Shown: positions 21,250 to 63,438 of the stretch, one piece after another
Layout of the letters: each line of letters begins with the position of its first letter
Numbering within the stretch: the stretch's first letter is position 1
Source of the DNA: Macrostomum hystrix
Taxonomy: Eukaryota > Animalia > Platyhelminthes
DNA length: 64,000 nucleotides
Assembly (NCBI GenBank): GCA_950097015.1
Contig: CATNEN010000029.1
Span: 5,952,001 to 6,016,000 of the forward strand
Direction of reading: 5' to 3'
Translations under genes and position numbers: made by a program
The notes under the pieces: generated by a model
Told to the model about the DNA's origin: nothing
The model's database searches: none
What the model saw: only the letters and a program-made list of their open reading frames with translations

Positions 21250-22090
21250 TATATATTTTTGCAATAAATTTCGTCGTTTTTGCGTTCAATTTCGGCGCGA
21301 GCGCTAGTGTGCAGTCCAAACAACTGAGCCATAGACACTGGACAACTTTTGCGTTCAAATTCGGCCGTTTTGCGTCCTATTTCGGCAGTGCAATCACATG
21401 GGAACTGTGGGGACAGTTCGAATGTTTTTGCCATAGACACTTTCTCACTCGATCGCGTTCAGTGAGGGTGGGATGAAAAATTTGTCTCCGAAAGCAGGCC
21501 TATAGTCGTCACCGCAAGTCTGTTTCGGTGTTTTTACTTTCTGCTCCCGGCTAGAATGCCTCCAAGTGGACAATACACGTGCGTCACGACAGTTGATCGA
21601 CAGAGACTGATCGCAGCTTACGACTTCAATGCAGACTGGCGAGCGCTCGCTCGTGTGCTGGGCTTTGCGCGCCAAACTGCGGCAAGCATTATCAAAGCCT
21701 ACGCTGACCAGGGCAGAGCGGACCCTCTTCCAAAATGCGGAGCAAAGAGGCGTCGCTTGACAGATGAGATGGTGAATGCGATCACCGAATTCCTGGAGAC
21801 CCAACCTGGCGCAACAGTGGCGCAGATGAGGAACCACATCCTGCAGGGATTCCCCAATCTAGTGAATGTGTCACTTTCTGCCATTAGCCGCGCACTGGAT
21901 GGAAGACTCATCACTCTCAAGCTCATGAGAGGGAATCCAGTGGATTGGAACACTCCCGTGACCAAGGAGGCCCGCCGCATGCATGCTGAGTGGATTCTGG
22001 CCGAAGGCGTCCATCGCCACACGATCTGGCTTGACGAGTTCGGTGTCAATCTGTGGACACTCCACAGTCAGGGCTGGGCTCCACGAGGTA
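21250..22090 (+). mobile_element. 3'-truncated IS630/Tc1-like element (ORF 21556-22122)
   Basis: MPPSGQYTCVTTVDRQRLIAAY...TIWLDEFGVNLWT is a close paralogue of 23796-24857 and stops after the first catalytic D. The upstream tttttgcgttcaatttcggc resembles that element's TIR. Confidence 0.85.
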
Positions 22091-23159
22091 TATTTAGTTT
22101 AGTGACGACGGTTGCAGCTTAACTCTGCATGCTTGAAGCTTGCTGATAGCAAGGAAATACCTAGGACCCCTTGCATGTACATATACGTATGTTTGCTTGA
22201 GAATGAGTCTGACTACGTATGACTACACATGGAAATAAGAAAAGCTGCAATAGATTTATATTGCAATAGATAGAGAGGAAAGGCCATAGACAACTTGCAC
22301 AACTCACCGCGCTTATGGCTTTAGGGCCTAAGGAGTTAGTTTTACTTTTGTCTATGGCTACGAGAGGCAGAAGTATAATTTTAAAACAGGCCACACGAGA
22401 ATTATAAACTTTGTGACTCCTTACTCCAAGAGCGAGGAATAAAGAGAAGTGAACAAAAAAAAGCCGATACAATTATCAGAGCAATTTCGAGTGTAAATTA
22501 TTCCCTTCTGGTGACGGTGAGTTAATAAACTGCTGAAACTGTTTGTCGAAACGCAAATACTATCAAGCTTTCCGAAGCCAGAACTATTTTCTATTCTTGT
22601 AAAATTTATATTGCAGTATTGTATAGTCTAAATGAAGTTTATTCTTTCGTATAAAAAACTAGGGCATGCTATATTACTATACTAATACACAATCATACTG
22701 GGATTTGTTTTATGGAAAAACGAAAACTTGACCATATTCTTTCGTCGTTACTTTTGTATACGGCTGAGACGAATATTATATAGATTAACAAAGCACAATA
22801 TATTTGCCAGACTTTTTCGGCAAACTTATCGTTAGCTTAAATTTTATTAAAGATTTTAAGCTCTGCGACACGCAGACCTTGGCTTGTCAGCCTTTAGTCG
22901 GTCGTTTTGCTCGACTTAAGATTTTGCCATTTTTCGATCAACAGACTGTCGCTTAAGAGCTTGGAGACGGGCATCTCGCTCAACCGCGGCAACTCGGCCC
23001 GACGCCGCCGCTTAGCTTCGCGACTTTTCTGCAGCAATCTACTGTTCGTAGAACGTTTTGGCGCTAGAAACTGTACAATGTAGAGCAGCAAGCAAAAACA
23101 ATAGTAGTTAAAAGTAGTAGTAGCTTAGATTGAAGCTTGCACTGAGGTACTTTCACTGA

Positions 23160-23365
23160 ACCGCTCGTACGGAATGTCGATGCCCCAGAGCGCGCCTCCC
23201 AGCTTGACGTTGATCTGGGCAGCAACATTAACGGCCACTTTCTTCTTGCCTATCTTCTTGGGATCGCCGATAATCTTGGTCCACAGGCACTGGGTTAGGC
23301 ACCACTAGCTCAGTGCAGCAGAGCCTCTTGACCATGTTATAGCACCTCCCGCTGCGAGATGAATA
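23160..23365 (-). pseudogene. piwi: PIWI-clade Argonaute MID-domain fragment (one frameshift)
   Basis: With one extra A removed at about 23295, the minus strand reads YSSRSGRCYNMVKRLCCTELVVPTQCLWTKIIGDPKKIGKKKVAVNVAAQINVKLGGALWGIDIPYER. This matches the PIWI MID signature (Y..IKK.LC.....PSQC......K....IATKIA.QMNCK.GG.LW.VDIP), with the Y, K, Q and K 5'-phosphate-pocket residues kept. It is preceded by a CTGAC...CAG acceptor-like site. Confidence 0.85.
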
Positions 23366-23493
23366 CTGTGCAGAGGTCAGTGCTGTGTAGAAGTTCTCTC
23401 TGATGGTAGTAGCTTAGAAATTGCAAACCACTGGTGGATTATTCTTGACATTGACAGCCGTTCCAGCTGCAACTTCAGCCGGGTCACAAACTA

Positions 23494-25096
23494 TACCTTT
23501 TTGCGTTCTATTTGGGCTTTCTTGCGAGCCATTTGGGCAGCGCAGGCAGTGGTGAGCGAGACGAAAGCAGGCACTCTGTGCCATAGACAAAGATTGCATT
23601 TGCTTCTGAATTCGGCAACCAATTTGGGCCTCTTTGCGAGCAATTTCGGCCATTTAAAAGCTACGCTATGAACGCAGAAGAACATGAGCCATACAGACAA
23701 ACAGACAAAGAGGTGAAAGCACCAATAGGAAAAATGTTAACTTGGGAAAACAATCAGACTGACTAAAAAGGAGTCAACATGATGATGTCAAAACGTCACT
23801 CGGTAATGTCAGCTGCCTCGAGGCAACGCTGCATGTAGGTCAGACTGTGGTTCACCCACTGTCGACACTTGAATGGCGTGATCTCGAATACAGCCGTGTC
23901 GATCAGTTGCTGCAGAATCCGCAGTCGTTGCTGATGTAGCGTGCTTCCCGCTGCGGCTGCTGCGTCTCGGTTACCGGCTTGGCGTTGAATGTCCGGTTGT
24001 GACAAGCTGCGCTTCAGAGCAGCTTTCAGGCAGGAGCCAGCTCGCTCAGCTGCGTTCAGGAACGGCGAGTATGGCGGTAGAAAACGATGATTGTGTCCTT
24101 CACGCATTCCTGGCACGTTTGTGTGAGCGCGGGCACCGTCCGTGAGAAGGACAAACTCTTCATCCAATAGCTCGTCTAATTCAGACAGAAAGGCTACAAA
24201 ATTCTCGTTCTTGAAGCCGCCGACAACTGTCGTGTAGTGCGCGAGGCCATGCACAGACGAGATTGCCAAGCAGATTGTCAGATTCTGACCACGTTGGTCA
24301 TTCACAACTGACACAGCTCGCTGTCCGCGCCGCGCCCAACCTTGGCTGCGTGACGTCCACAAGTTGACGCCGAACTCGTCGAGCCAGATCGTATGCTGCT
24401 GCACTCCCTCAGTCAGCATCCATTCTGCATGCATGCGCCGAGCCTCCTTAGTCACGGGCTCGTTCCACTCTACCGGATTGACCCTTGCCAACTTTAGCGT
24501 GACGAGACGACCATCCAACGCCCGACTGATGGCCGATTGCGATATAATGGCGACGTCGGGAAAACTATGCTGTAGGCGCAGCTGCATCTGATTCAGCGTC
24601 GCTGTCGGGTGCGATCCCAGGAAGTCGACGATCTCCTCAATCATTCCTTCCGTCAGTCGACGCCTCTTGTCGCCACCCTTTGGAAGTGGGGCTGCTCGGT
24701 CATGCGCAATAAAATTGCAGACGATGTTGGCTGCTGTCTGACGCTTGATGCTAAGCATGCGCGCTAGGTGTCGCCAGTCGGCATCATTCTGGTAGGCTCC
24801 AATCAGCCTCTGTCTGTCAACAGCCGATATGCGCGAGTAATGACCGCGAGGCGGCATCGCGTTCAGAGTATGCTTATGTTGCTGACTGTTGTGACTTCTA
24901 TGACTGCTGCCCCTGTTTTTTATCTCTGACTGCCACCACTGGCCGAAATTGCTCGCAAAGAGCCCAAATTGGTTGCCGAATTCAGAAGCAAATGCAATCT
25001 TTGTCTATGGCACAGAGTGCCTGCTTTCGTCTCGCTCACCACTGCCTGCGCTGCCCAAATGGCTCGCAAGAAAGCCCAATAGAACGCAAAAAGGTA
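23494..25096 (-). mobile_element. Complete IS630/Tc1-superfamily DNA transposon, about 1.6 kb, TIRs 159/157 bp, TA TSD within CTAG
   Basis: TIRs 23494-23652 and 24940-25096 differ only by two 1-nt indels. Flanks read c-TA-[element]-TA-g. Confidence 0.92.
23796..24857 (-). CDS. Intact 353-aa IS630/Tc1-like transposase, DD30E
   Basis: N-terminal HTH, GGDKRRRL linker, IWLDEFG (D1), LLTDGARAH (D2), LPPYSPFLNAAE (E). 30 residues counted between D2 and E. Confidence 0.92.
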   Translation of the reverse strand: MPPRGHYSRISAVDRQRLIGAYQNDADWRHLARMLSIKRQTAANIVCNFIAHDRAAPLPKGGDKRRRLTEGMIEEIVDFLGSHPTATLNQMQLRLQHSFPDVAIISQSAISRALDGRLVTLKLARVNPVEWNEPVTKEARRMHAEWMLTEGVQQHTIWLDEFGVNLWTSRSQGWARRGQRAVSVVNDQRGQNLTICLAISSVHGLAHYTTVVGGFKNENFVAFLSELDELLDEEFVLLTDGARAHTNVPGMREGHNHRFLPPYSPFLNAAERAGSCLKAALKRSLSQPDIQRQAGNRDAAAAAGSTLHQQRLRILQQLIDTAVFEITPFKCRQWVNHSLTYMQRCLEAADITE

Positions 25097-25299
25097 TAGT
25101 AGTGCTTGACTCATGACGGTGGATGTGTCTACCATGGCCTGCTTGGATGCCTTCGTGTGTAGCGAAGACACCAAGCTCACCGACATGTTTCGCATCTTGC
25201 AGTCTCTTCTAGAACCCAATTGTAAAATGCGCTCCACAGTTCGCGTCTGTCATCTTGCTCTCAACTACAAAAAATTTAAGTCAAGGCGGTGGATTTGTG

Positions 25300-26330
25300 T
25301 TTCGGTTAGCGGGATAAGAAGCTAGCGGGCTTTGGCTCCGGCTTTATTTGGTTGAGCTGAGTACAGATAATCTATGGGAAAGAGGGAAGGCTAGTATTGC
25401 TTCGTAGAATAAAGTAAGGTTGTCTATGTAAACAAAGGAAAGTTAGAGTCGTAACCAAATCCTAAATAAAAGTTCATTTGAGACTCTAAAGCCTATGCCC
25501 CTAACCAATTAACTAACTATACTCCTTACAGATTTCGGAGACTCTGTAACCTGCGTTGGATAATTAGGTAGTTCCTTTACAACTGTGGAGTGAATACAGT
25601 GGGTTTTAACTTCTTTCAGATTAGAAATATCACAGATAATTGTATTTCTTGGGCTCAGCCTTTAGCTTTGCCACACACTAGAGCTCTTGGCTTGTTAATC
25701 ATTTTATTTCTACTTCGGTTCACTCGCTTTGCCTCCCAGCGCAGGAGCTACTGTTCGCACGAGCATTTGTGCCATAAACTAGAGTCTAGCCTTTCTAATC
25801 TAAACTAGATTCTTATCGAAATTAGAATATGCGTACGCAAGAAGTCACAACACCTCTCACACTCCTCCCCGTTAAATGATGTTAAATGAAGCCTAGGAGG
25901 GAATTTCTGGTTGGTGGTATTGCAGTATCGCTGTGGAGCCTATCTTGTTCTCTGGCTCCGGCGAACAGCTTGGGTGCCCTCGACTGTCTTAGACTGCACT
26001 TCGTCTACATCCGGTTCAGCTGCGTCTCGGATGGTGTATTGTGTGCTCATCATCCGAGGCTTGACCTGCTCCAGGTGGTGGCGGCAGTGTCCACCTTCGC
26101 TCAGTTTGACATCCACGATCGCATTTTCTTCTCAGGAAATAACCTCCCCTGCCTTCCATTTGGCCACCTCATTGTTGTATGTCTTGACCCACACAGGCTC
26201 ACGGGACAGGGCAAACGCTAGCGGTGTCCGTAGAAGGGGACCCCGCATCAGCTCGGTCGGGGACTTGCCTGTCGACGCGTGCTTGGCATTTCTGTCTAGA
26301 ACATTCGATTCTTTTTCTAGAACAGCTCCG
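25300..26330 (-). mobile_element. Ty3/gypsy 3' fragment: integrase C-terminus, PPT and probable 3' LTR
   Basis: Minus strand reads RNAKHASTGKSPTELMRGPLLRTPL, EPVWVKTYNNEVAKWKAGEVIS*, CRHHLEQVKPR and RRSQRTR*APQRY. The purine tract GGGGAGGAG (25870-25862) is followed by TGTGAG at 25861. The LTR end is not located precisely. Confidence 0.75.
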
Positions 26331-63130: not shown

Positions 63131-63438
63131 ATAATAATAATAATAGTTGATTACACCTGCCCCAATTGGGTCAGATGTGCAGCCGACAGCACAGCCGCAG
63201 CTTATGCGCGGCGCATCTGAAGGCTGCGTACAGCTGTTCAGTCCACGGACTGGGGGACGCCACACCCACCTTCAATTATCCCAGCTGATGCTGGTACCCA
63301 TTTAACAGCTGGGTGAACTGAAGCAATGCAGAGTTAAGTGTCTTGCTAAAGGACGCAAATTGTTCCAGTGGAGTCGGGAATCGAACCCCCGACCTTCAAG
63401 TCGTGAGTCCGACGCCCTAACCACTAGGCTACAACCTC
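63131..63438 (-). mobile_element. Full-length tRNA-derived SINE family 2 with a CORE-like central domain and a 10-bp TSD
   Basis: Head GTAGCCTAGTGG...GGTTCGATTCCC, central gcgtcctttagcaagacacttaactctgcattgcttcagttcacccagctgttaaatggg (resembles the MIR CORE consensus as recalled), (TTA)n tail, and TSD ttgaatttta at 63121-30 and 63439-48. Confidence 0.85.

Follow-up and report, generated by a model that had tools for sequence, protein, structure and literature searches.

Does a transposon nest in this window (the whole 64,000-nt stretch of Macrostomum hystrix DNA that was analysed) hold a piwi gene that a young transposon has broken in two, and does the remainder of that gene act on the silencing machinery to which its relatives belong? 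An earlier note had inclined to a yes on the first part and had offered a feedback loop or a transposon-favouring decoy for the second. The two parts call for different answers, and we take them in turn, beginning with the piwi sequence itself.

The piwi-derived segment, as delimited by blastn, occupies 250 bp of the minus strand, and its best partners are two piwi loci on contig C33 (L011 and L012), which we treat as its parents:

23157..23406, minus strand: piwi pseudogene fragment (blastn 87% over 250 bp to L011:4889-5137 and to L012; tblastn E 1e-26)

At a blastn E value of 3e-82 against the two C33 genes, chance is excluded as the source of this match. The base-level alignment to the parent exon has 223 identical positions out of 243, with 20 mismatches, and the 3' 190 bp are the best-preserved part. 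Divergence from the parent is not so great as to preclude long exact pairing, and excessive divergence, which the earlier note would have taken as a refutation, is not what we see: 41 28-mers are shared exactly between the fragment and the parent exon, and the longest identical runs measure 47, 41 and 34 nt. Within the MID exon piece of the parent, which is 236 aa long, the fragment covers aa 152-233, the 3' third of the exon, and contains the C-terminal part of MID with its 5'-phosphate pocket, up to the MID/PIWI boundary. The pocket residues, five in number (Y, K, Q, Q and K), are indeed all encoded, within 23157-23340. The Q and K of its QINVK, the last two of the five, align to Siwi residues 645 and 649, which are pocket positions in the numbering of the Siwi structure. 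A 59-aa open piece at 23128-23304 matches the Pfam Piwi profile (E 1.8e-5, profile positions 28-72), and among PDB sequences it matches PIWI-clade proteins only, Piwil2 best (E 7e-5), with Ephydatia Piwi, Piwil1 and Siwi. With the Pfam and PDB matches and the 87% identity to the C33 genes, the claim that a decayed fragment of a PIWI-clade gene, rather than of another Argonaute, sits in the transposon cluster is borne out.

The decay is more extensive than had been described. The MID segment is present as claimed and its single-nucleotide frameshift is confirmed, being due to one additional A at 23296; the limits, on the other hand, are 23157-23406 and not 23160-23365, and three further indels are found, a loss of 4 nt near 23375, a loss of 2 nt near 23345 and a gain of 6 nt at 23242-23247, the last being the only one of the four that leaves the frame unshifted. 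A functional gene would need an open frame with N, PAZ, MID and PIWI domains, whereas the fragment offers some 82 codons of one exon and no start. With three frame-shifting indels, no start and about 80 codons, 23157-23406 codes for nothing.

The parents are of a different kind. Their loci on C33 lie about 448 kb apart in inverted orientation, and a second, distant piwi pair on contig C30 shows 31-48% identity to the C33 type where the two can be matched:

C33:510737-512309, plus strand, and C33:958613-960218, minus strand: the C33 piwi pair, 448 kb apart
C30:1319643-1320563, minus strand, and C30:2062111-2063040, plus strand: the C30 piwi pair, inverted, 742 kb apart

The inverted pairing of both piwi types may reflect large inverted duplications. 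Taken singly, the exon pieces of the parent match Pfam PAZ (E 2e-29), MID with the start of Piwi (E 5e-11), Piwi (E 3e-31) and the Piwi C-terminus (E 1e-23), and the C33 parents are complete PAZ/MID/PIWI genes of the PIWI clade. For the 236-aa MID exon piece the match to Ephydatia Piwi-A has an E value of 5e-36, while AGO-type proteins reach no better than about 1e-7, and we therefore assign the origin of the fragment, on homology, to a PIWI-clade and not an AGO-clade Argonaute gene. The two C33 parents are identical to each other across the block represented in the fragment, and the pair as a whole is about 95% identical, introns included. The parent intron that follows the MID exon (L011:5140-5572) consists almost entirely of a 24-nt minisatellite, and the next intron (L011:6100-6960) carries a longer minisatellite array; the homology of the fragment stops right where the first of these arrays starts.

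Apart from the C33 loci themselves, no other sequence of this type was detected. A search of the genome (220 Mb, 42 contigs) with 23100-23491 returned three matches, namely the fragment and the two C33 loci, making the fragment the sole extra copy of this piwi block. When the MID and Piwi exons were compared with the whole genome, singly and unspliced like the parent exons in all our searches, no further fragments of the C33-type gene came up. When the four parent exon pieces were compared with the 64-kb window by tblastn at word size 2 and E values up to 10, nothing appeared beyond the 250-bp block. Since its arrival the fragment has thus not been re-copied or amplified with any transposable element.

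Upstream of the fragment, in the sense of the minus strand, lies the element that had been taken to interrupt it:

23494..25096, minus strand: complete Tc1/mariner-type element (TA duplications, inverted repeats, Pfam DDE_3)
23492..23493: TA target-site duplication, left copy, read from the sequence
25097..25098: TA target-site duplication, right copy, read from the sequence

The description of this element as complete and intact stands, with its ends corrected to 23494 and 25096, each flanked by TA. Its inverted repeats are about 160 bp long and include a 118-nt perfect core (23512-23629 and 24962-25079, 100% complementary), and its transposase ORF (23796-24857) is intact and encodes 353 aa with matches to Pfam DDE_3 (E 2.6e-18) and HTH_32. 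The catalytic residues are D160, D240 and E271, with exactly 30 residues between the second D and the E, hence DD30E. The element has the TA duplication, the terminal inverted repeats and the DDE transposase by which Tc1/mariner elements are recognised; as to its spacing, a full-text search of the open literature found no group called DD30E. The family comprises one other full-length copy (96% identical) and many internally deleted, MITE-like copies (96-98%), and 'young and complete' is a fair label for the copy described here.

What the element interrupts is not piwi. A genome search with the right flank of the insertion led to a family of 2.17-kb elements, 92-99% identical among copies and encoding a 482-aa protein, which we call a Crypton because that protein carries the Pfam domains DUF3504 and Phage_integrase. 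The flanks of the insertion belong to a relic of this family:

23417..23491, minus strand: Crypton relic, last part kept, aa 446-471 (BLASTP to L037:1402-2850:-, 42% identity, E 2e-4)
25099..25249, minus strand: Crypton relic, aa 393-445 (BLASTP 62% identity, E 6e-19; tblastn E 9e-14)
25257..25496, minus strand: solo LTR-like repeat nested in the Crypton relic (40 genomic matches, 75-80% identity, many of them paired)
25542..25643, minus strand: Crypton relic, aa ~350-384, tyrosine-recombinase region (tblastn 46% identity, E 0.007)

When the flanks were rejoined after in-script removal of the Tc1-like element, a single blastn alignment spanned the junction, from 23415 to 25249, and the insertion point falls between Crypton codons 445 and 446. 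The peptides that had been read from the rejoined site as the preceding MID region, SSLHTKASKQAM and NPPVVCNF, are Crypton residues, the first of them lying in the part of the relic that encodes aa 393-445 (25099-25249). Further out, 25526-25601 matches by blastn the adjoining part of the same Crypton family copies. The earlier note had made its reading depend on piwi homology continuing across the insertion site; word-7 blastn and word-2 tblastn on the transposon-excised site confine that homology to the 250 bp already described. The alignments therefore place the Tc1-like element within an old Crypton relic, not within piwi, and the idea of a piwi gene interrupted by a young transposon has to be given up. 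Members of the Crypton family have a tyrosine recombinase with DUF3504, whereas the copy in the window is a C-terminal relic only. Elsewhere in the genome, the LTR-like repeat occurs in pairs that are spaced by 4.26 kb and enclose integrase and gag-like ORFs, and the ORFs between one such pair match Pfam rve, Integrase_H2C2 and DUF7041. At another locus (L036, C38:13839400-13844800) the Crypton family is represented by a head-to-tail pair, whose members share 99% and 94% identity with the L037 copy; the one full-length DD30E element outside the window lies some 3-4 kb from this pair.

The two ends of the piwi piece differ. At the upstream junction, again in the minus-strand sense, the Crypton frame is truncated 11 codons before its normal stop; a stop follows the Crypton end at 23414-23416, and the piwi piece starts about 10 bp further on in the same frame, with a few shared bases (CTA) at the joint. 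Because this joint falls within the Crypton ORF and some 450 bp short of where the element ends, it is illegitimate and not a transposon terminus. At the downstream junction homology ends within 6 nt of the exon/intron boundary of the parent: past the exon end there is a 2-nt gap and then GTGA, the parent splice donor, after which similarity is lost. Four intron bases were thus probably kept at the end of the fragment, which would weakly favour genomic DNA over cDNA as its source. The chance that a random break within the 711-bp exon ORF would land so near the junction is about 2%, and we would guess that the break at the exon end is due to the unstable minisatellite of the intron.

An end that coincides with an exon end is a feature that the fragment shares with processed pseudogenes. 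It differs from them in being part of one exon only and in seemingly carrying the four donor bases of the intron, and origin as a retrocopy is ruled out by the absence of both the next exon and a poly(A) tail. That exon would be expected about 430 bp downstream, and tblastn did not find it in the approximately 1 kb of unique DNA there. This stretch (22300-23156) lies between the piwi piece and a truncated Tc1-like copy on the plus strand. DNA and protein searches of the genome found no second instance of it, it has no family or Pfam match, and Rfam and tandem-repeat scans of the fragment region returned nothing relevant.

The nest around these pieces is made up of Tc1-like or mariner-like, Crypton and LTR pieces and lies between two host genes:

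~11.6-16.9 kb, minus strand: host gene for an SLC26-type sulfate transporter
21556..22119, plus strand: truncated Tc1-like transposase, N-terminal 178 aa (63% identical to the intact one, tblastn E 2e-71, Pfam HTH_32)
58.7-60.8 kb, minus strand: host gene for an LRR-Ig protein
63369-63438, minus strand: a single tRNA gene (Rfam RF00005, 31.8 bits)

Of the 12 coding pieces of transposable elements (Tc1-like, mariner-like and Crypton) from 19.3 to 49.5 kb, 11 are on the minus strand, a count in which some pieces may belong to one element, and 21556-22119 is the lone piece on the plus strand. The piwi piece is likewise on the minus strand, as had been stated for it and the transposons around it. 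The dominant strand of the nest is also that of both flanking host genes.

We propose, with a probability of about 0.78, that 23157-23406 is an inert relic, an ordinary broken gene fragment beside a Crypton. A piece of about 250 bp of C33-type piwi genomic DNA would have been pasted beside a truncated Crypton in the nest by illegitimate joining, presumably double-strand-break repair or template switching, and would then have decayed neutrally. Later, in the order that the nesting suggests to us, the solo LTR and the Tc1-like element would have inserted into the Crypton part and not the piwi part, leaving a piwi piece that is presumably without function. The identity of the fragment, its limits and breaks, its single-copy status and its Crypton flanks are established. 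For the relic we count the confinement of homology to 250 bp, the broken frame, the flanks that meet at Crypton codons 445 and 446, the three genomic matches, the uniqueness of 22300-23156 and the completeness of the parent genes. Against it we count the coincidence, at about 2%, of its 3' end with the exon/intron junction, together with the orientation of 11 of the 12 pieces and the long perfect matches to the parents, which are what a source of piRNAs against piwi would need.

The same downstream junction allows another origin, in which a complete third piwi gene once stood at this site and transposon insertions and deletions erased all of it but the fragment. The apparent splice-donor GTGA points to a genomic and not a cDNA source, piwi duplications are present as the pairs on C33 and C30, and, the parent intron being a fast-evolving 24-nt minisatellite, it is conceivable that intron homology was lost. 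However, no trace of any other exon is found in the window even at E 10, Crypton coding sequence stands, from about 10 bp upstream, in the place of the rest of the MID exon, and the exon expected some 430 bp downstream is missing from the 1 kb of unique DNA; we consider a lost third gene unlikely.

Other readings grant the fragment a role. If the nest from 19 to 50 kb were a plus-strand unistrand piRNA cluster, the fragment could give rise to piRNAs antisense to the C33 piwi mRNAs and so feed back on one of the worm's own Argonautes. Nested transposon fragments in one dominant orientation, a mark of unistrand clusters, are found in 19.3-49.5 kb with the piwi fragment in the same sense, though such polarity is weak evidence for a cluster at this particular site, and the 41 shared 28-mers and identical runs of up to 47 nt would permit perfect pairing. 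M. lignano has both unidirectional and bidirectional clusters, although these make up only 0.63% of its genome (PMC4604429). In mammalian testis, piRNAs from pseudogenes that lie in clusters are described as targeting the parent genes (PMC4423968, PMC4436662, PMC6461890). What the present locus has in common with those systems is a gene fragment in a strand-polarised nest, long perfect matches to the parent and the possibility of antisense precursors; it differs in being described at the level of DNA and in that the putative target would be a PIWI gene itself. One of the same sources, a study of cluster evolution in primates, suggested that pseudogenes are of limited relevance in piRNA-mediated gene regulation (PMC6461890), and the fragment, with four indels in 250 bp, decays like neutral DNA. 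We therefore regard a piRNA source at this site as a distinctly improbable reading, and its full form, in which the nest would be a working unistrand cluster and antisense piRNAs from the scrap would slice or tune both C33 piwi mRNAs in an autoregulatory loop, as very doubtful indeed.

Capture of the piwi piece by a transposon, which would carry it as a decoy or sponge to counter silencing, is hardly credible and nearly refuted. Although the piece adjoins the end of the Crypton coding sequence in the same orientation and frame, it is found in no other member of the three adjacent families (Crypton, Tc1-like and LTR), and only three genomic matches exist. The junction falls inside the Crypton ORF, 11 codons ahead of its stop, instead of at an element end; truncation and breaks have affected the host Crypton copy too, and the lack of amplification with any element weakens the idea further.

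The inert relic that we favour is of a kind already known, both from pseudogene fragments in piRNA clusters and from the genome of Macrostomum lignano, in which PIWI-like gene fragments were reported by Zhou et al. 2015 (PMC4604429). The fragment described here resembles those of M. lignano in being a short, non-coding piece of piwi away from the full-length genes; that paper gives no anatomy of its fragments, whereas here the limits, breaks, parents and neighbours are mapped. What is new is therefore a mapped member and not a new kind. Only if the scrap made piRNAs against piwi would it gain weight, since a pseudogene would then serve a defence pathway in the regulation of its own effector. 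As it stands the finding carries little weight: it maps one case in which part of a host gene has come to lie among transposons, and it sets right an attractive but mistaken reading, in that what looked like an interrupted piwi is an interrupted Crypton.
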